A DNA stretch of 38,350 nt from Fonticula alba ATCC 38817. Its lineage: Eukaryota; Protista; Nucleariida. The stretch lies in NCBI GenBank assembly GCA_000388065.2, contig KB932205.1, one strand, 5' to 3'. The notes beneath the pieces are model-generated. The model did not search any database, had not been told where the DNA came from, and saw nothing but the letters and a program-made list of their open reading frames with translations. The position numbers and the translations under genes were made by a program. Shown here one piece after another: positions 1 through 29,000 of the stretch (its first letter is position 1; the number at the start of each line of letters is the position of its first letter).

Positions 1-92
1 GAGCGAATGCAAAGGAGCCAAAACGAGGAAAGGGAGAAAAGCACAGAAAGAGGCAAGGAGAGAGGGAGGGGGAGGGGGGAGAGCGTGCGTAC

Positions 93-1574
93 CATCAGAA
101 GCAGCAACGAAGGCCTGGCCATTGGCCAGAAGAGTAGGAACGGTGACCGCACGCTCCAAATCGTCTGAACGAGGGGGTCGGGCGACAAAGCGAGAGGAAA
201 AGGGCAGGCAGACCGACCGACGGAGAGGGGGAAAGGGAAAAGGTCAGACAAACGCCGGTGCCAAAAAAGAAGAAGAGGAAGAAGAAGAGGAAGAAGAAGA
301 GGAAGAAGAAGAGGAGGAGGAGCAGAGAGACATCCGGGACACATACCCTGAGCATCGATCTCCAGGAAGTGCCGCCAGGCGACATTGCCCGAGGTGAGGT
401 CCACGCCGACGGCGCGATCGGCCCAGAGGAGAGCCACGGCCGAGGTCCCAGGGATCAGCCGCATCGACACAAAGCCGAAGGGGGTGGCCCCGGTGGCCAG
501 GGAGGAGTGCGTGCTGGAGGCGGTGCTGGTGAGGTCCTCGGCCGGGGTGCTGGGCCCGGTGGCCCCGGCGAAGACCGTGGCCAGCGACTGCTCCCACAGG
601 ACGGCACCGGTGGACGCATTGATGGCGATCAGCACGTGCCCTAGCCGGGCGACGACCGCCGCCGCATGGGCCTCCCCCTGGCCATCGGGCCCGGGGATCG
701 GGCACATCGGCACATCGACCAGCACCGAGGGCACGCGGACGATCCCCTCCAGCGAGGAGAGGGCGCCAGACCGGGCCAGCGGCTGGGACGACGTCACGGT
801 CCAGAGGATGTCGAAGACACAGGACCCGCGAGCCGGGCGGATGCCGATCTTCATGACGCGATTGTCGAAGGCTGTGTCGGCCCAGCAGGGGGCGCAAGAA
901 GGGGAGGGGGGGGGGGAAAGCCGAGGGGATGGTTTGTCGTTTGTTCGCGAGCACGTGGTAGGAAGGGCAGGGGAGGTGTTAGCTGGGCGGGAAAGGGGGG
1001 GGGGAGAGAGAGAGAGACAGAGGCCGAGGACGGGGACGAGGCCCAGCAGGAGGACACCGGAAGACCGGGGGATAGGAGCATGCACGAACCGACATAGATG
1101 CCATTGTCAGCGGCCTTGAGCAGAGCCAGGCGATCGAAGGGGAGCTCCACCGGCGGCGGAGGGGTCGGCTTGGCCGGAGTCGGGGGCTGGGACTGGGCGG
1201 CCTTTTCGGCGGCCTGGGCCTCAGCGGCCGAGGCAGCGGCAACGGCATCGGCCGCCGGGGCAGCGGCCGCCGCGGCCGCGGCCGCGGCCGCGGCCGCAGC
1301 CGCAGCCGCCTTCTTGGCCTTCTTGGCCTCGGAAACGAAGCTGCAGACCAGCTTGTGGCTTGACCAGGCAGCGCGCTGGCACACCGGCGAGCAATAGTGC
1401 ACCATGTGACAGGCACACAGGTACTTGGGGTTGCGCCCGTCACAGTGGCCGCACTTGCGCTCGGCCGGCGACGTGGGGGCCGTCTCGCCGGAGGGGGACA
1501 CGGTGTCGGTGCCGACCGGCGAGCTGGCCCCGGCGTCAGTGTTCACCACCACCGGCGTCGTGGCGGCGGTAGCA

Positions 1575-1606
<32 letters not shown>

Positions 1607-3162
1607 CGCAGCCTCAGCCTCGGCCTCGGCCTCAGCACGGGCCTTGGCCTCGGCCTCGGCTTGGGCGGCGGCGGCAGCGGCGGCGGCAGCAGCAGCCTCG
1701 GCCTTGGCCTTGGCCGCAGCCTCGGCCTTAGCCTGGGCAGCGGCAGCCGCCTCGGCTTCGGCCTTGGCCTGTGCGCGAGCGGCCGCCTCAGCCTCGGCCT
1801 TCTCCTTGGCGCGAGCAGCGGCAGCGGCATCGGCCTCGGCCTGGGCCTTAGCCTTGGCGGCGGCGGCGGCGGCGGCATCGGCCTCGGCCTGCGCGCGGAT
1901 GGCCGCCTCGGCCTCGGCCTTGGCCCGGGCAGCGGCCTCCTCCTTGGCACGAGCGGCCTCGGCTTCCTCCTGGGCACGGGCAGCGGCGGCCGCGGCCTGG
2001 GCCTTAGCCGCTGCGGCATCGGCCTCAGCCTGGGCCTTGGCCTTGGCGGCGGCCTCGGCCTCGGCCTTAGCTCGGGCAGCGGCGGCGGCGGTCTCGGCCT
2101 CCAGGATGCCGGCCTTGCTGGCAGCCTCGGCCTCGGCCTTGGCCTTGGCGGCGGCCACCTTCTCGGCGTTCTCCTTGCGGAAGACACAGGTCTTCTTGTG
2201 GGCGGGCCAGTCGCTCTTCTGGCACTCCGGGCTGCAGTACATGACAGAGGGCCCGCAAGCCTGGCAGTGGTAGATGGCCTCATTGCCGCAGACGCAGCAG
2301 ACCGACGGCGACTCGTCGTCATCCTCCTGGTCATCGTCCCCCTCGATGTCGATGTCCTCATTGACGCCGGAGGAGGAGGACTCGGCCACGGATGGGGCCT
2401 TGACTGCCTGAGTTGCGACCTCCTCGGCGGTCGGGCTGTCGGGGCGATTGGCGCCACCCTGTGGGAGTGAAAGCAAGAGGAGGGGGGCAAGCGGAGAAAG
2501 AGAGGAAGAGGGAAGGGGAGGGGGGAGAGAGAGAGAGAGGGAAGCAGAGGCAGAGGAAGAGATGCATCGGCAGAGGGAGAGAGAGAGAGAGAGACCAGAA
2601 AGAAGGGGGGATTGACTTAAGGTCAGTAACATGTGTACCCAGGCAGGGGCCCAGGCGGGGAGATCTAGGGAGAGGGAGGGAGGAGAGCCGATGCAGGGGC
2701 ATACCTTGATCACGAGCAGCTTGACGGATTGCTGGTCGGCCAGAATGGCCAACACGTCGTCGTGAACCGTGCCGACGATGGAGCTGTCATTAATCTCGAT
2801 GATTTCATCGCCCGGGGCCAAGCCCACCTTGGTGGCATTGCTGCCGGGGGACATACGGGTGATGGTGGTGCGGCCCTTGCGACAAGTGCGGATGCTGATG
2901 CCGAACCCGCCGCCCGGCGTGCGGGACAGGATGCACGAGTGCCGATCGAAGGGCTGCAGGATGTCCGACGGGACAGAGTCGGCATTCGGGTCGTACACCT
3001 CCAGCTTGCCGCGGTCGGCATGGACAATGTGCCTGTGTGCACATGTTCAAGATCAAAGGGCGACGAGGGCGACACCCGGCAGGGCGATGGGTCAGACCGG
3101 TCGAACACGGGCATGCACAAGGGGCACGTAGCATGAGGGCGAAGGGGGTAGGCGGGCGGGCG

Positions 3163-3194
<32 letters not shown>

Positions 3195-3644
3195 CTACAC
3201 ATGCGCATGCAAAATAAATGCCGCCCCGGGAGAGCGCACGCACCGGAAGTCGGTCGGCAGGCCGATGGTCTTGCGATCGATCTTCTTCTTCTTGGAGTCC
3301 TTTTCACGCAGGGTGTCCTTGCGCAGGAGCGACGAGAAGCCACCCTTGCGGGCCTTCTCCACGGGCGGGGGGAGATCATCCGAGGAGGAGGTCGACACAG
3401 CGGCCACCGGGTCGGCCACATCGTCATCTGGGATCACCGAGTCCGGGGGGATCATGTCCGGGCTGACAGGGGGAGACCCGGCTCCGGTGGCGGATGCCGG
3501 CGGCCGGGGGGGCGGGGCCGACGTCGGCCCGGCCGGCACGTCGCCCTTCTTCGAGCGCGACATACGCCGGCTCAGCGACCGGAAGAGGGTCGGGCCGCCG
3601 GGGCTGGCGCTGGGGTCCGAGGGGGGACCCGAGGCGGAGGACAT
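93..3644 (-). CDS. Multidomain protein: polybasic+CRIB, PDZ, MYND zinc finger, long Ala/Glu/Lys helix, second MYND, PQQ-like beta-propeller repeats (3' end beyond window start)
   Basis: Exons 3644-3244, 3032-2705, 2458-1090, 871-347 and 164-93 all have GT..AG introns with consistent phases (2,0,1,1). Spliced motifs: IGLPTDFR|HIVHAD (CRIB); GGGFGISI...GLAPGDEIIEIND (PDZ); CCVCGNEAIYHCQAC..YCSPECQKSDWPAHKKTC and CGHC..CAC..YCSPVCQRAAWSSHKLVC (MYND); LIAINASTGAVLWEQ and VGVDLTSGNVAWRH (PQQ-like). Confidence 0.85.
269..322 (+). repeat. (GAA/GAG)n purine triplet repeat in intron 165-346 of the CRIB-PDZ gene
   Basis: Direct reading: gaagaagag tandem units; forms a pyrimidine tract on the coding strand. 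Confidence 0.9.
1565..2165 (-). repeat. Ala/Glu/Lys-rich coding low-complexity repeat (AKAKAEAEAAA-like) between the two MYND fingers
   Basis: gcc/gag/aag codon repeats; about 200 aa with no Pro and almost no Gly. Confidence 0.85.
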
Positions 3645-4667
3645 GGCTGCGGGGCGCAAGCGGTTAGACCGGCAGGCGTGCCAGGAGGGCTGATGAGGAG
3701 CGAGCGGGGCGCGAGGCGCAAGGGAGGCACCAGGGAACGGTGCGAAGGCAATGGTGTGCGCACCTGGCGTGTGGGGTCAGCCGGCTGCGGGATGGACGCA
3801 GGGTCGAGCCGGATGAGGAGGGCTGGGACGGGCTGGGAGGGAGGAGGAGGGAAGGGAGTGTGTGTGGGGGGGGGGAGGGGGGGGCGAGGGAGGGGAGGAG
3901 GGTGGATAGGAGAAAATGCGCCTCAATCTCGCGTGCGACGGAGGGGTGCTTTCAGCTGCAAGTGCATGGAGATTGGCGCCAGCCAGTGGGTCAGTCCAGG
4001 GAGGGGAGAGAGAGAGAGGGGGGGGGGAGGGAGCGAGCGAGCGAGCAAATCGGCCAGACGAAGGCACAGGGCGGGGGACGGTGGGGAGGAAGGTACGTTT
4101 GAGGAAGCCGAGGACTGGCGAGTGGAGGGCGGGCTGCGGGGGGAAAGCGAGAAAAGGAGCGAGGAAACGGAGAGGAGGAGAGGGGGGGATGCTCGGATGC
4201 CCCGGTCGGAGCCTGGGCACAATGGCGCCCGATGGGTCATCACCGTGACGTGGCCAGACGAAGCAGAGACCTGCCCAGAGTGAAGGAAAGCGTAGACCCC
4301 GCTCAAGGGGGGCCGGCCCCGAACGGGGCGACGCGGGAGGCCCTCGCGCACCGGGGATCAGCCATCAGCCCTGGACTGAGGAGCCGGAACAAGCGGGGAG
4401 ACTGACCGCGGCCAATCCTCCATGTCTGTACTCGGCAAATATATCGAACACCCTCCCCCCCCCCCCTGCACCCCACAGGCGCGCGCGCGCGCGCGGGAAG
4501 CGGCAGGCAGCCCGCTTTTTTGGCCGCCAGGGGGCCGGGCCGACCACACATTTGGTCAAGCTGATCACCTTTCACTTTTCGGTGCGCACGCGCGCGCATC
4601 GGCGTGAAGACGGGCACACGGACCGCGTCCCCAAGCGCCCCCCCCCCCCCCGCACGCGCACGCGCAC

Positions 4668-4677
4668 NNNNNNNNNN
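4668..4677. other. Assembly gap (10 N)
   Basis: N run. Confidence 1.
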
Positions 4678-7480: not shown

Positions 7481-7840
7481 NNNNNNNNNNNNNNNNNNNN
7501 NNNNNNNNNNNNNNNNNNNNNNNNNNNNNNNNNNNNNNNNNNNNNNNNNNNNNNNNNNNNNNNNNNNNNNNNNNNNNNNNNNNNNNNNNNNNNNNNNNNN
7601 NNNNNNNNNNNNNNNNNNNNNNNNNNNNNNNNNNNNNNNNNNNNNNNNNNNNNNNNNNNNNNNNNNNNNNNNNNNNNNNNNNNNNNNNNNNNNNNNNNNN
7701 NNNNNNNNNNNNNNNNNNNNNNNNNNNNNNNNNNNNNNNNNNNNNNNNNNNNNNNNNNNNNNNNNNNNNNNNNNNNNNNNNNNNNNNNNNNNNNNNNNNN
7801 NNNNNNNNNNNNNNNNNNNNNNNNNNNNNNNNNNNNNNNN
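7481..7840. other. Assembly gap (360 N)
   Basis: N run. Confidence 1.
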
Positions 7841-8329: not shown

Positions 8330-9975
8330 TTAAGCAGAGGTGGGCTCCTTGGCCAGCTCGGCCTTAATCTGCTCCTCCATGTCCATGGGATCCGAGCGGG
8401 GACCGACACTGGAAGTGGGATGCAACGGCAGGGGGAGAGGCGGGGGTGAGGGGGGGGGGGATTTTCCACATGGCAGCCAGAGGGGGAGAGAAGGTACGAA
8501 GGAAGAGAAGAGAAAGAGCGAAGCAAGGCGAAGGGCGACCCCATTCGCGGCACGCGCGGCATCACACCAGCAGGAGAGTGGCATTGTGTCAGGCAAACCG
8601 CAGACATGCACTGAAGAGGGGGCCGGCAAATGGACAAGGTGATTGAGGAGGGGGGGGGGGCGCATGTGCCCCCCCTCCTTTGCGCAGTCACATACCGGGA
8701 GACAACCTGGCCATCGCGATTGATGATGAACTTCTCGAAGTTCCAGGAGATGGGCCCCGAGTCCTCGGACTGGGCCTTAAGCCAGGTGTACAGGGGGAGG
8801 GCCTCCGGGCCATTGACGTTGATCTTGGAGAACACCGGGAAGGTGACGCCGTAGTTCAGCGAGCAGAAGGATTGGATCTCCTCGTCGGTGCCGGGCTCCT
8901 GGTAGAGGAACTGGTTGCAGGGGAAGCCAAGGATGACAAGACCTGTGCCGCCACATGGAGAGCGGGGGGGGGGGGGGGGGNNNNNNNNNNNNNNNNNNNN
9001 NNNNNNNNNNNNNNNNNNNNNNNNNNNNNNNNNNNNNNNNNNNNNNNNNNNNNNNNNNNNNNNNNNNNNNNNNNNNNNNNNNNNNNNNNNNNNNNNNNNN
9101 NNNNNNNNNNNNNNNNNNNNNNNNNNNNNNNNNNNNNNNNNNNNNNNNNNNNNNNNNNNNNNNNNNNNNNNNNNNNNNNNNNNNNNNNNNNNNNNNNNNN
9201 NNNNNNNNNNNNNNNNNNNNNNNNNNNNNNNNNNNNNNNNNNNNNNNNNNNNNNNNNNNNNNNNNNNNNNNNNNNNNNNNNNNNNNNNNNNNNNNNNNNN
9301 NNNNNNNNNNNNNNNNNNNNNNNNNNNNNNNNNNNNNNNNNNNNNNNNNNNNNNNNNNNNNNNNNNNNNNNNNNNNNNNNNNNNNNNNNNNNNNNNNNNN
9401 NNNNNNNNNNNNNNNNNNNNNNNNNNNNNNNNNNNNNNNNNNNNNNNNNNGGGCGGACAAGGACGAGTTAGCACATTGCCGGCGGCCGCCGGGCGGACGA
9501 AGGGCCAAGCAGCAAGGCAGGGCGCACCGTCATCCTTGTACTTGGTGTACAGGGCCTGCAGGGCCTCATACTGCGGGGTGAGGCCGCACTTGCTGGCCAC
9601 ATTGACGATGACCACAACCTTGCCCTTGTACTCGGACAGGGGCAGGCTCTCGCCCGAGGCCGTGGTGACGGTGAAGTCGTGCAGGGAGTTCGCCTCGACC
9701 GGGGTGTCGGGGCCCGAACCGTGGATCATGCCGATGATGGAGCTGAACATGACGGCTGGCGCATGGCGAGGGCGCAGCAGCGGGGCCACACGCGATGGCC
9801 CGAGCGCAAGATGGTGGCCGGTGAAGGAGGAAAAGGCGCGCACGGCGGAGGCAGGCAGGGGATTAGTGGCAACCGGGGGGGGTGGCGGGCACGCGGCGCG
9901 CGGCAGGGCGGCCACAGCCAGACCGGTTGACCGGCGGGACAGGGCCCGGAGTGGCAGCACGCGACCGGGGAGCAT
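8330..9975 (-). CDS. GPX: Cys-type glutathione peroxidase / thioredoxin-dependent phospholipid-hydroperoxide peroxidase with N-terminal transit-peptide-like extension
   Basis: Exons 9975-9528, 8942-8696 and 8408-8330. Motifs [14 protein letters not shown] (TGC, not TGA), [27 protein letters not shown] and [10 protein letters not shown]. The gap at 8981-9450 lies in intron 1. Confidence 0.95.
8981..9450. other. Assembly gap (470 N) inside GPx intron 1
   Basis: N run. Confidence 1.
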
Positions 9976-18668: not shown

Positions 18669-18956
18669 AGGGGGAGGAGGGAAGATGGATGGATGGAGAG
18701 AGAGAAACATACCAAGGGAGGGGAAGATCCACCTCGCGGCGGAGAGCAGGCGCCCCGGGGAAGATGAGGACACTGCAGGGGGATTCAGACCGGGAGGACC
18801 GGGACCGCTGCATGCACAGAGAAGGGCGGGGTCTGGATGGGGGCAATGTATGTGAGTGGGGTGCGCGAAAGGGAGGGGAGCATAAAGGCCAAGGAGGGAG
18901 AGAGGAGGATAGGGAGAGAGAGAGAGAGGGGGGGGAAATGTGGAGGGAGGAGGGGA

Positions 18957-21017: not shown

Positions 21018-21679
21018 NNNNNNNNNNNNNNNNNNNNNNNNNNNNNNNNNNNNNNNNNNNNNNNNNNNNNNNNNNNNNNNNNNNNNNNNNNNNNNNNNNN
21101 NNNNNNNNNNNNNNNNNNNNNNNNNNNNNNNNNNNNNNNNNNNNNNNNNNNNNNNNNNNNNNNNNNNNNNNNNNNNNNNNNNNNNNNNNNNNNNNNNNNN
21201 NNNNNNNNNNNNNNNNNNNNNNNNNNNNNNNNNNNNNNNNNNNNNNNNNNNNNNNNNNNNNNNNNNNNNNNNNNNNNNNNNNNNNNNNNNNNNNNNNNNN
21301 NNNNNNNNNNNNNNNNNNNNNNNNNNNNNNNNNNNNNNNNNNNNNNNNNNNNNNNNNNNNNNNNNNNNNNNNNNNNNNNNNNNNNNNNNNNNNNNNNNNN
21401 NNNNNNNNNNNNNNNNNNNNNNNNNNNNNNNNNNNNNNNNNNNNNNNNNNNNNNNNNNNNNNNNNNNNNNNNNNNNNNNNNNNNNNNNNNNNNNNNNNNN
21501 NNNNNNNNNNNNNNNNNNNNNNNNNNNNNNNNNNNNNNNNNNNNNNNNNNNNNNNNNNNNNNNNNNNNNNNNNNNNNNNNNNNNNNNNNNNNNNNNNNNN
21601 NNNNNNNNNNNNNNNNNNNNNNNNNNNNNNNNNNNNNNNNNNNNNNNNNNNNNNNNNNNNNNNNNNNNNNNNNNNNNNN
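21018..21679. other. Assembly gap (662 N); probably hides HACD exon 1
   Basis: N run; the HACD exon at 21760 begins in phase 1 with no upstream ATG exon visible. Confidence 0.9.
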
Positions 21680-22165: not shown

Positions 22166-23372
22166 GTCGAGGGGACGGGGGACGGGCGCGATCCGAGCCC
22201 GCCCCCGGCCGCCCCGAAGCCCCGCCCCCCCCTCCGCTTGCTCCCCTNNNNNNNNNNNNNNNNNNNNNNNNNNNNNNNNNNNNNNNNNNNNNNNNNNNNN
22301 NNNNNNNNNNNNNNNNNNNNNNNNNNNNNNNNNNNNNNNNNNNNNNNNNNNNNNNNNNNNNNNNNNNNNNNNNCCCCCTCTCTCTCTCTGCCTTCTTCCC
22401 CCTCCGCTAACTTCTCGTGTGCCACCGGCGGTCATTGTTGCCGGCCCGGGCCTCTGTCCTCCCCCTCCCATCAGGTTCTTCATGTCCTCTTTGGCCTGGT
22501 CCCCTCCCCCTTCATGACCACCCTGATCCAGGTTTGCTCTCGCCTGTTCATCGTCTGGTCCATTGGCTACTCGATCGAGCAGTCCCAGTCCCACTGGTCC
22601 TTCACCACCATGGTGGTCTCCTGGTGCATCACCGAGGTCATCCGCTACGTGTACTACGCCTTCAACCTGATTGGTGGCGTCCCCTCCCTGATCACCTGGC
22701 TCCGGTGCGTCCTGGCGCCTGAGCCTCACGCGTCGCGTGTCCCCCCCCCCCTCCCCCTCCCCCACCAGCCTCCATTCCGCGCGCACGGCACTCTTCTTTG
22801 GCTTTCCCTCTGTGTCTCCCCGGCATCGGGTGCCATGTTTATGTCTCTGTCTGACCCGCGATCCCCCCTGCCCGTGTTTCCCCCTCTCCCCCCCCTCTCC
22901 ATCTCCCTCTCTCTATCAATCTCGTTTGCCACAGCTACACCACCTTCTTCATCCTCTACCCCACCGGTGCTGGCAGCGAGTTCGTCTTCGCCTACTGCGC
23001 TCTGCCCTTCATCCAGAACATCTACCTGTACTACTTCGTCTGCTTCACCCTGGTCCTGTACTTCCCTCGTGCGTCACATGTCGGCTCCCCTGCCTTCCCT
23101 TTCCCCACGCCTCAGGGGGGCGGGGGCGGGGGGGAGGCGGGGGCAGCCCTCCCCGGGGGATGGTCTTTTCGGTCTCATGTGCTGCAAGCCGTCTGCTCTG
23201 GATCCTAACCGTCACTCCTTGTCTGCCTTCCCGTTGTCCCGTCCACCATGTCGCGCCCCTTGTCAATGCTCTCCCCTTTGCAGTCTTCCCCGTCCAGTAC
23301 TTCCACATGATCAGCCAGCGCCGCAAGTACCTCGGCCGCGGCCGTTCCTCTGGCAAGGCCAAGACCCAGTAA
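21760..23372 (+). CDS. HACD: Very-long-chain 3-hydroxyacyl-CoA dehydratase (HACD/PTPLA/Phs1), 5' partial
   Basis: Exons 21760-21995, 22475-22704, 22935-23068 and 23284-23372. Motifs YLFVYNVVLASGW, FQTAAIMEVLH, QVCSRLFIVW, SWCITEVIRYVYY, WLRYTTFFILYPTGAGSE (catalytic Tyr/Glu region) and YFHMISQRRKYL; C-terminal KAKTQ is a KxKxx ER-retrieval motif. Confidence 0.95.
22248..22373. other. Assembly gap (126 N) in HACD intron, probably false
   Basis: The sequence after the gap repeats about 22028-22058. Confidence 0.8.
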
Positions 23373-26077: not shown

Positions 26078-29000
26078 ATGCCCCCCAAGCGTGGTCGCAA
26101 CAAGACCAACGCTGGTCGCCCGAGTACGCTATGTTTTCCACATCCTCTCCCTGTTATTCGTATGAATGGATGGCTGCTTGGGATGTGAGCTAACAGCTGT
26201 TTCCTGGAATCCTGGTTCTTTCTCTCCCCCTCCTGCCGGTCAATGTCACAGAGGCTGCCAAGACCCCCGCGCCCACCAAGGCCGCGGAGGTTGTGGACCC
26301 CACGCTCGACACCACTCCTGTGGATGCTCCCCCTCTTGTTTCCAGCGAGCCCGCCTCTCCCCAGACCGAGGGGGTCTCCGTTGATGCCGACACCACCGAG
26401 GAGGCTGCCGCCGAGGCTGTCGCTGAGGTGACCGTCGATACTGCTGAGGTCGCCGAGTCTGTTGCCGAGGAGGTTGTCGTCGCGGAGGCCGCTGAGGAGA
26501 CTGCCGTTGAGGAGGTCGTCGAGCCTACTGTTGAGGAGGCTGTCCCGACCACTGAGGAGGTCGCCCAGGAGGTCGCCATTGAGAGCGTCGAGGAAACCTC
26601 TTCCGAGGCCGCTATCGAGGAGACCACTGTCGAGGAGGTTGCCATCGAGGAGGTCGCCATCGAGGAGGCCACCATCGAGGAAGTCACTGCCGAGGAGGTC
26701 GCCGTTGAGGAGGTCGCTGTTGAGGAGGCCACCGTTGAGGAGGTCGTTGAGACCACTGTCGAGGAAGTCGCCGAGGAGGTCGCCGTTGAGGAGGCCACCA
26801 TCGAGGAGGCCACCGTCGAGGAGGCCACCGTCGAGGAGGTTGTTGAGACCATTGTCGAGGAGGTCACCGAGGAGGCCACCGTCGAGGTCGTCGAGGCCAC
26901 CGTCGAGGAGGTCACCGAGGAGGCTACCATCGAGGAGGCCACCGTCGAGGAGGTCGTCGAGGAGGTCACCGAGGAGGCCACCGTCGAGGAGGTCGCCGTC
27001 GAGGAGGTCGCCGTCGAGGAGGTNNNNNNNNNNNNNNNNNNNNNNNNNNNNNNNNNNNNNNNNNNNNNNNNNNNNNNNNNNNNNNNNNNNNNNNNNNNNN
27101 NNNNNNNNNNNNNNNNNNNNNNNNNNNNNNNNNNNNNNNNNNNNNNNNNNNNNNNNNNNNNNNNNNNNNNNNNNNNNNNNNNNNNNNNNNNNNNNNNNNN
27201 NNNNNNNNNNNNNNNNNNNNNNNNNNNNNNNNNNNNNNNNNNNNNNNNNNNNNNNNNNNNNNNNNNNNNNNNNNNNNNNNNNNNNNNNNNNNNNNNNNNN
27301 NNNNNNNNNNNNNNNNNNNNNNNNNNNNNNNNNNNNNNNNNNNNNNNNNNNNNNNNNNNNNNNNNNNNNNNNNNNNNNNNTCGAGGAGGTCGTCGAGGCC
27401 ACCGAGGAGGTCGTCGAGGAGGTCGTTGAGGCCACCGTCGAGGAGGCCACCGTCGAGGAGGCCACCGTCGAGGAGGCCACCGTCGAGGAGGCCACTGTTG
27501 AGGTCGTCGAGGAGGTCGTCGAGGAGGTCGTCGAGGAGGTCGTCGAGGAGGTCGTCGAGGAGGTCGTCGAGGAGGTCGTCGAGGCCACCGTCGAGGCCAC
27601 CGTCGAGGCCACCGTCGAGGCCACCGTCGAGGCCACCGTCGAGGCCACCGTCGAGGCCACCGTCGCGGCCACCGTCGAGGCCACCGTCGAGGCCACCGTC
27701 GAGGAAGCCACTGAGGTTGTCGAGGCTGAGGCTGCTGCTGAGGGCATCACCGCGGAGGAGGCCGCCATCGAGGCCGCCGTCGAGGCCGCCCTTGCGCAGG
27801 TCGCCGATGACATCATTGACACCATTGTCGGCACCATTGTCGAGACTACCGAGGAGGCCATCAATGAGACCGCCGTCGAGGATGCCTCCGAGGCTCCCGA
27901 GACCCCGATCGCGGATCTCTCTGACGAGCTGGCCGTCGCCAGGCTGGCTGCCCTCGTCGAGGAGGTTGCCGCTGCGCAGGAGGAGATCATCAAGGACGGG
28001 GAGCATTCCGCCCCGGTCTTTGCCATGCCCTCCGAGCTGACTGCAGCTTCCCCTGGCTCTTCCACGACCACGGCCGAGGAGGCTACCGCCTCCAACGAGG
28101 AGGCCGCCTCGGGCCAGCTTTTCTCCACTTCCCCGGCCGACGGTTTCATGTCTCCCGAGGAGGCGGTTGATCTGCTTGCCACTCTGACGAAGGAGCTTGT
28201 TGCCAAGGACGCCGCCCTCATCCAGTCGGATGATGTCCCCCCGGCCGCCGCTTCCGTCGATGCCGATGAGGTCCTTTGCTCCTCGCCCTCCGCCGGCCAG
28301 GTGGTGGCCGACAAGGGCCTGCCCATCGCTGACAGCACTCCTGATGCCCGGCCCGCCGGTGAGTTGAATCCGATTACCCTGTGTTCGGAGTCGCTGGCCA
28401 GCCGGGGCCTCATGCCCGGCTGGTCTACCCTCCGTGGGCAGGCGCCCTTCGAGGCGGCTGACGACCAGCTCCTGGGCGATCTGGTTCCCACCTACCCCCA
28501 TGAGGCCACTTACAGCTTCACCTTCACTCGTGAGCTGAACCTCATCCAGGTCCGCTCGACTTCGCTGCTCCCCTTCACCGAGGATGATGTCCAGGTTCTG
28601 GTGCATGGGCGCGAGTTGGTGGTCACCATCGCCGACACCCCGTCGCCGATCATCTTCGGCACGCTCTTCGGCGACATCAAGCCCGAGGCCTGCCGCTGGT
28701 CTGTGTCCTCGCGCGGCCAGCTGACCAGCCTGTACATCGAGCTGATCACCGACGGCCCGGCCGACTGGCCGGCCTTCCTGGTCCCGGGTGAGACTGGTGT
28801 GCGTGTCTCCACCTCCCTCTCGATGTTCATGTTGTCCCTCTTCTTCTTCTTCTTCTTCTTCTTCTTCTTCTCTTTCTCTCTGTTTCTTCTTTCACGGTCT
28901 TTTCTCATGTCCCTTCAACCCTTCGCTCACTTTCCCTCCCTCTCCCCTCCTCCACCTCCTTCTCTCGTTTCTTCCCCCTCTCTCCCTACCTCCAGGCCAT

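Follow-up and report, generated by a model that had tools for sequence, protein, structure and literature searches.

The window, which is the whole 38,350-nt stretch of contig KB932205.1 of Fonticula alba ATCC 38817 that was analyzed, contains on its minus strand, surrounded by a region of 67-70% G+C, a gene that is spliced and expressed and whose product is a large multidomain scaffold of at least 929 residues. From its N-terminus the protein comprises a disordered segment, a polybasic patch with a CRIB-type motif, a spacer, a PDZ domain, a MYND finger, an Ala/Glu/Lys tract, a second MYND finger and a propeller-like region. Judged from its sequence, it is probably a lineage-restricted Cdc42/Rac effector scaffold (CRIB-PDZ-MYND-tract-MYND-propeller) that was built by domain shuffling. 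To our knowledge, and in the literature that was searched, a CRIB motif adjoining a PDZ domain is otherwise described for Par6 only, and the arrangement in Fonticula most likely reflects independent domain shuffling in this lineage, not descent shared with animal Par6.

Gene structure and splicing

Transcript evidence was provided by Logan contigs of four runs from 2012 (two samples, one study), labelled 'RNA?', which were aligned to stretch 1-4400 of the window, and this single study supports all of the splice evidence. The contigs skip five intervals (3033-3243, 2459-2704, 3647-3763, 872-1089, and 165-346), each of which has GT..AG ends on the minus strand and is skipped in all four runs, with 73-255 letters matched on the shorter side. 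The skip that corresponds to intron 1 removes 211 nt between 3031/3032 and 3243/3244 (CT..AC on the plus strand) with 218-255 letters on the shorter side, and contig depth falls to zero in the bins that lie within introns 1 and 2. Since the contigs are composed of exons alone and have canonical junctions, they are transcript contigs and the junction 3244/3032 is confirmed; minor unspliced forms may exist beside the spliced form. The original prediction, which was made from the DNA letters, had placed a splice from 3244 to 3032 and had proposed that the junction be checked at the RNA level, and the contigs skip exactly the interval 3033-3243 and show the predicted join. A further joint, 3515/4006, has GG..GG ends with a side of 21 and was rejected as a repeat artefact. 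The resulting gene model, in the direction of transcription, is as follows.

3764..3864, minus strand: 5' untranslated exon, upstream end approximate (contigs cover 3764 to ~3843-3864 and join to 3646; no ATG)
3647..3763, minus strand: 5' UTR intron, 117 nt, GT..AG, ending 2 nt ahead of the start codon (joint 3646/3764, four of four runs)
3244..3646, minus strand: exon 1, with ATG at 3644, encoding 133 residues and two bases of the Arg134 codon (contigs, translation)
3033..3243, minus strand: intron 1, 211 nt, GTGCGT..CACAG, phase 2 (skipped in four of four runs)
3163-3194: (CCAG)n microsatellite within intron 1
2459..2704, minus strand: intron 2, 246 nt, GTATGC..CCACAG (skipped in four of four runs)
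1090..2458, minus strand: exon 3, encoding an acidic linker, MYND finger 1, the Ala/Glu/Lys-rich tract and MYND finger 2
872..1089, minus strand: intron 3, 218 nt, GT..AG (joint 871/1090, four of four runs)
347..871, minus strand: exon 4, encoding a weak beta-propeller-like region (same contigs as exon 3)
165..346, minus strand: intron 4, 182 nt (skipped in four of four runs)
92..164, minus strand: exon 5, lower end undefined (contig; the transcript continues for at least 829 nt)

Because the 5' exon (~3764-3864) has no ATG, the known transcript contains no start codon ahead of the one at 3644. Exon 1 ends, on the minus strand, with ...ATC GGC CTG CCG ACC GAC TTC CG at 3244, followed by GTGCGT, and the G at 3032 with which exon 2 begins completes CGG (Arg), after which come CAC ATT GTC CAT GCC GAC. 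The last codon of exon 2 is AAG, down to 2705, and intron 2 opens with GTATGC. Retention of intron 1 would truncate the protein, which would then read ...DFR-CVRSPGAAFILHAHV-stop. The five spliced exons give an open frame of 929 residues that reaches the first base of the window without a stop, and hence the protein has at least 929 residues and a C-terminus that lies outside the window. One contig carries 829 further letters past the last aligned exon piece (92-164).

The two halves of the CRIB-type motif are joined only by the removal of intron 1, and the motif is, as had been pointed out beforehand, invisible in the ORF track. Intron 2 contains no stop and keeps the frame, and the plain ORF list (851..2998) therefore reads through it. 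With the motif present only in spliced mRNA and an intron that can be read through in this way, ORF-based annotation misreads the gene.

The CRIB-type motif

In the spliced protein, ...LREKDS is followed by KKKK (residues 118-121), IDRKT, IGLPTDFRHIVH (127-138), ADRGKLEVYDPNADSVPSDILQPFD, and RHSCILSRTPGGGFGISIR, and downstream of IGLPTDFRHIVH come ADRGKLEVYDPNADSVPS, then DILQPFDRHSCIL, with the GFGI loop of the PDZ domain at 177-180. The elements of this region are located as follows.

3282..3293, minus strand: polybasic patch KKKK, residues 118-121, five residues ahead of the motif (aligned with the KKK of the WASP and N-WASP peptides)
3244..3266, minus strand: CRIB motif part 1, IGLPTDF and two bases of Arg134 (residues 127-134)
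3020..3032, minus strand: CRIB motif part 2, the last base of Arg134 and HIVH (residues 135-138)
2945..3019, minus strand: 25-residue spacer ADRGKLEVYDPNADSVPSDILQPFD, from the CRIB motif to the first PDZ strand

The motif residues, I-G-L-P-T-D-F-R-H-I-V-H-A-D, conform to the consensus I-S-x-P-x(2-4)-F-x-H-x-x-H-V-G, the five most diagnostic residues (I, P, F, H, and H) being exact in both identity and spacing. Position 2 has Gly for Ser, as in WASP, and the V-G that follows the second His in the consensus is replaced by A-D. A 50-residue peptide across the splice junction was used as the query for motif family searches of Pfam and of 177,635 PDB sequences. In Pfam it matched a single family, PBD/CRIB (PF00786; E = 0.048), with 14.4 bits, which is below the gathering threshold of 21.3 bits, and the match covers only profile positions 2-13 of 59, the part of the p21-binding domain downstream of the core not being recognizable in it. 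In the PDB there were three matches, all of them CRIB peptides, from WASP (1cee_B, E = 0.12), N-WASP (8s5t), and PAK (1ees_B), with E-values of 0.12-1.6 that are individually marginal. The residues in common with WASP are K-K-K-I...I-G-x-P-x-x-F-[KR]-H-[VI]-x-H.

The strict pattern I-x-x-P-x-x-F-x-H-x-x-H is expected by chance, given the protein's own composition, ~9e-7 times over the 60 positions that precede a PDZ and ~0.04 times per 3-million-residue proteome. With [ILV] allowed at the first position, the relaxed pattern matches once by chance when the window is translated in all six frames, near 18,890 and in a frame that is not coding, and a bare regular expression is therefore no proof. 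Since nothing else was matched in Pfam or the PDB and the five diagnostic residues are exactly spaced, it is concluded that this should be a genuine CRIB-type short motif, one that falls short of a full Pfam PBD domain.

The PDZ domain and the remainder of the protein

The domains that follow the spacer are located as follows.

2708..2944, minus strand: PDZ domain, residues 164-242 (Pfam, AlphaFold2, structure alignment)
2186-2299, minus strand: MYND finger 1 (Pfam zf-MYND)
1556-2167, minus strand: Ala/Glu/Lys-rich tract, 204 residues, between the MYND fingers
1343-1453, minus strand: MYND finger 2 (Pfam zf-MYND)

The exon 2 product is recognized as a PDZ domain by Pfam (PF00595, E = 4.9e-11, 43.3 bits versus a threshold of 23.2), and AlphaFold2 (AF2), for which the input alignment consisted of 67 PDZ segments from library hits, predicted exon residues 30-108 with pLDDT 96-98 and with strands and helices in the order typical of PDZ domains. 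By VIA-align the best match of the model is tamalin/GRASP (Z = 15.6, rmsd 1.0 Å over 82 residues), and ~800 other PDZ chains lie above Z = 8. The carboxylate-binding loop is GFGI (177-180), with Gly178 invariant in the alignment, and His224, the first residue of helix alphaB, aligns to the corresponding histidine of NHERF1. A histidine at the alphaB1 position of PDZ domains goes with class-I ligands, which have Ser/Thr at position -2. The domain can be assigned with confidence as a canonical PDZ with class-I-type features. The closest PDZ domains in the PDB sequence search were those of NHERF1/2, IL-16, harmonin, and syntenin (E about 4e-6), while NHERF1, PALS1, harmonin, CNK, tamalin, and syntenin headed the Foldseek and VIA-align results (50 rows each) and the ESM Atlas neighbours were syntenin-2, NHERF1-like, and PDZD11. 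In the same AF2 model, which was computed on the exon 2 piece, from the second half of the motif onward and with no GTPase, the 29 residues ahead of the PDZ (half motif and spacer) form a coil with pLDDT 56-70; since a coil is what is expected of a CRIB without its GTPase, this is uninformative on any coupling between CRIB and PDZ.

Exon 1 encodes a low-complexity, Pro/Ser-rich N-terminus without a Pfam domain. Downstream of the PDZ, two stretches belong to the zf-MYND family (PF01753, 9e-14, 51.7 bits versus a threshold of 22.7), and exon 4 has a weak beta-propeller-like match to PQQ_2 (E = 5.4e-4), which is below the Pfam threshold.

Searches for relatives

No orthologue was found by word searches, a HMMER scan, or a metagenome contig scan, the last of which gave no relative. 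Region 1-100 of the read-through ORF had no match in the word search and region 1-330 had tick NHERF1 alone (E = 5.6e-3). The HMMER scan of exon 2 against 1.84 billion representatives yielded 839 hits with identities of at most 37% and no match of the protein to itself. The best 150 of these 839, ranked by summed score, are mostly multi-PDZ proteins, and none of the 150 contains a CRIB or semi-CRIB pattern. Among the matches listed, the best single domain scores 40 bits and is in a four-PDZ protein, and one match to a bacterial repeat protein (P0014) was rejected as spurious because its score is additive. A single-PDZ orthologue scoring under ~55 bits would fall outside the best 150 of the 839 and, with these places filled by multi-PDZ proteins, a weakly conserved one could have been missed. 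The literature search found nothing that links Fonticula with CRIB or PDZ.

Relationship to Par6

Par6 is the textbook case of a GTPase that allosterically controls a PDZ domain. Its PB1 domain pairs with aPKC, its partners are aPKC, Par3, and Crumbs, and its semi-CRIB motif is not known to have the two histidines of the His-x-x-His type. PB1, semi-CRIB, and PDZ together define Par6, and the Par complex is considered to have originated in metazoans (PMC5968619). The binding of Cdc42 alters the affinity of the Par6 PDZ, and allostery between CRIB and PDZ is documented (PMC7094393, PMC11774777); the CRIB directly extends the beta-sheet of the PDZ (PMC11774777).

The original prediction described the Fonticula module as a complete CRIB with a polybasic patch ahead of it, directly upstream of a PDZ and in a protein without PB1, and offered as its origin either convergence or a pre-metazoan relative of the Par6 module. 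The description holds. The motif, with its patch, is present in the spliced protein and resembles those of WASP and PAK, the distance to strand 1 of a real PDZ (Pfam, 4.9e-11) is 25 residues, and a PB1 domain is absent, in that the 133 residues of exon 1 match no Pfam family at E <= 1 and the exon upstream is untranslated. As to origin, the two proposals fared differently. A specific relatedness of the PDZ to those of Par6 was found neither by sequence nor by structure nor with the junction pieces. The best 60 of 78 PDB sequence hits of the PDZ (E <= 0.01) do not include Par6, nor do the 50 Foldseek and 50 VIA-align rows, and Par6 is likewise missing among the ESM Atlas neighbours. The near ties among the Foldseek and VIA-align rows mean that the PDZ has no special affinity to Par6, rather than that it belongs firmly elsewhere. 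The piece made up of the spacer and strand 1, with DILQPFDRHSCIL, matched only ZO-1 PDZ1 at E <= 10 and not Par6, and the junction CRIB peptide retrieved WASP, N-WASP, and PAK from the PDB and not Par6. Hence convergence, in the sense of an independent adjacency of CRIB and PDZ, fits the data, while the other proposal, a relative of the Par6 module, found no positive evidence in searches that retrieve WASP/PAK, ZO-1, and NHERF-type PDZs, and kinship with Par6 in particular is unsupported by PDZ sequence, structure, linker, or CRIB.

Discussion

If the protein is the effector scaffold proposed here, a GTP-bound GTPase of the Cdc42/Rac type at a membrane would bind the CRIB motif with the help of the basic patch, and this binding would recruit the scaffold. 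The PDZ domain of the recruited protein might then bind C-terminal tails of the Ser/Thr-x-hydrophobic type and the MYND fingers might bind proline-rich partners. Rac1, Cdc42, and Rho are inferred for the opisthokont ancestor (PMC13393502), which makes partner GTPases plausible in Fonticula.

Three other explanations bear on this proposal. It is unlikely that the CRIB-like string arose by chance or has decayed and binds no GTPase, in which case the protein would be a PDZ-MYND scaffold whose N-terminus is basic and disordered. The Pfam PBD match is sub-threshold and confined to the core, the PDB E-values are only 0.12-1.6, the relaxed pattern occurs elsewhere in the window's six-frame translation, and no orthologues were found that would show conservation, all of which this explanation would account for. 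Against it, I, P, F, H, and H are all present with exact spacing in a place where the expected occurrence is ~1e-6, Gly is at position 2 as in WASP, the KKK patch lies at the WASP/N-WASP distance, and CRIB families are the only hits across Pfam and the PDB. Less probable again is that the protein functions as a convergent Par6-like switch, that is, an independently arisen module in which GTPase binding at the CRIB and spacer changes the ligand affinity of the PDZ. In the classic CRIB effectors (PAK, WASP, ACK) contacts with the GTPase extend over about 25 residues beyond the motif, and with the CRIB just 25 residues before PDZ strand 1 a bound GTPase would sit against the PDZ. Par6 itself provides the precedent for such allostery (PMC7094393, PMC11774777). 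However, the spacer is a coil (pLDDT 56-70) that is not packed on the PDZ, unlike the sheet extension in Par6 (PMC11774777), albeit in a model of the exon 2 piece alone, and searches with the junction pieces gave no sequence similarity to the CRIB-PDZ junction of Par6.

True homology with Par6, by which this would be a diverged, pre-metazoan relative of the CRIB-PDZ module with PB1 lost or never present, is highly improbable. The order of CRIB and PDZ is identical, and a resemblance before PDZ strand 1 (D-I-L...R-H/R...L) was noted by the earlier reader of the sequence. On the other hand, exon 1 has no PB1, Par6 is missing among the best PDZ matches in both sequence and structure, the junction pieces lead instead to WASP/PAK and ZO-1, the best 150 of 839 library hits have no CRIB or semi-CRIB, every other domain of the protein is foreign to Par6, and Par6 is treated as a metazoan innovation (PMC5968619).

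An effector scaffold assembled within the lineage would, if true, give the small toolkit known from this aggregative amoeba, which is close to fungi, a further component, a Rho-GTPase effector. Whether coupling arises easily from adjacency could naturally be tested on a second CRIB-PDZ of independent origin. Were the PDZ to be GTPase-switched, it would parallel the Par6 module by convergence, but be wired to MYND fingers and a propeller, not to aPKC. The origin of the Par polarity complex is not moved to before the animals.

Comparison with known systems

The PDZ domains of NHERF1/2, harmonin, syntenin, and tamalin resemble that of Fonticula (26-33% identity, E about 4e-6, Z 14-15.6) and share with it a GLGF-type loop and the alphaB1 histidine. 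These proteins, however, are without CRIB and without MYND fingers, and the similarity is at the general PDZ level, such that orthology would not be implied. WASP, N-WASP, and PAK have in the same way a polybasic patch and then I-G/S-x-P-x-x-F-x-H-x-x-H, but only the 12-residue core is matched, A-D stands for V-G, and in Fonticula it is a PDZ that follows instead of the downstream hairpin and helix. The Fonticula protein differs from Par6 in that it is without PB1, has a complete (His-x-x-His) motif in place of a semi-CRIB, separates motif and PDZ by a 25-residue spacer where the CRIB strand of Par6 extends the PDZ sheet directly, and carries partner domains (two MYND fingers, the Ala-rich tract, and the propeller-like region) that are unrelated to the Par6 architecture. 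What the two have in common is a motif of the Cdc42/Rac-binding type that is N-terminal to a single PDZ domain in the same polypeptide.

Repeats and Transcript Discrepancies in the CRIB-PDZ Gene

In this minus-strand gene, a CRIB-type motif assembled by splicing lies upstream of a PDZ domain and two MYND fingers.

Features within the gene (minus strand)
3163-3194, (CCAG)8 microsatellite inside intron 1, which splits the CRIB motif
2470-2640, CT-rich low-complexity sequence making up most of intron 2
1556-2167, Ala/Glu/Lys-rich tract of 204 residues separating the two MYND fingers
347-871, propeller-like exon (PQQ_2, E = 5.4e-4)
92-164, exon 5, following the propeller-like exon

Despite its CT-rich low complexity, intron 2 is stop-free and in frame, and ORF lists therefore read through it. 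In the Ala/Glu/Lys-rich tract the transcript contigs are interrupted, leaving 1618-1911 without coverage, and they carry small insertions and deletions together with a back-joint at 1987-2156. Possible causes are a repeat of unequal length in the RNA and the assembly, or collapse of the contigs. Past exon 5, one transcript contig continues for at least 829 nt that are unmatched to the window stretch tested (1-4400). The C-terminus, along with any PDZ-binding tail that the protein itself may carry, lies outside the window.

5′ Leader and Upstream Region

The leader in the untranslated 5′ exon is extremely C-rich and lacks an ATG, and the 5′ UTR intron (3647-3763) has its acceptor only 2 nt upstream of the start codon. 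Upstream of the 5′ exon, contig depth climbs again at 3823-4116, to a maximum of 53 in one run, with numerous loose contig ends at 4004-4016. This signal may represent a neighboring transcript or a low-complexity repeat common to other loci. The window also contains six N runs (4668-4677, 7481-7840, 8981-9450, 21018-21679, 22248-22373, and 27024-27380), which are assembly gaps or masked stretches, and the first two are found immediately upstream of the promoter side of the gene.

A Genome-RNA Mismatch in the PDZ Domain

At position 2852 (+ strand) the window has C while all four transcript contig sets have G, which converts the coding-strand ATG to ATC and replaces Met194 with Ile within the PDZ domain, such that the segment ITRMSPGS of the window is read as ITRISPGS from the transcript contigs. 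Strain variation or a mistake in the assembly might account for the mismatch. In PDZ domains the position matching residue 194 is usually Ile or Val.
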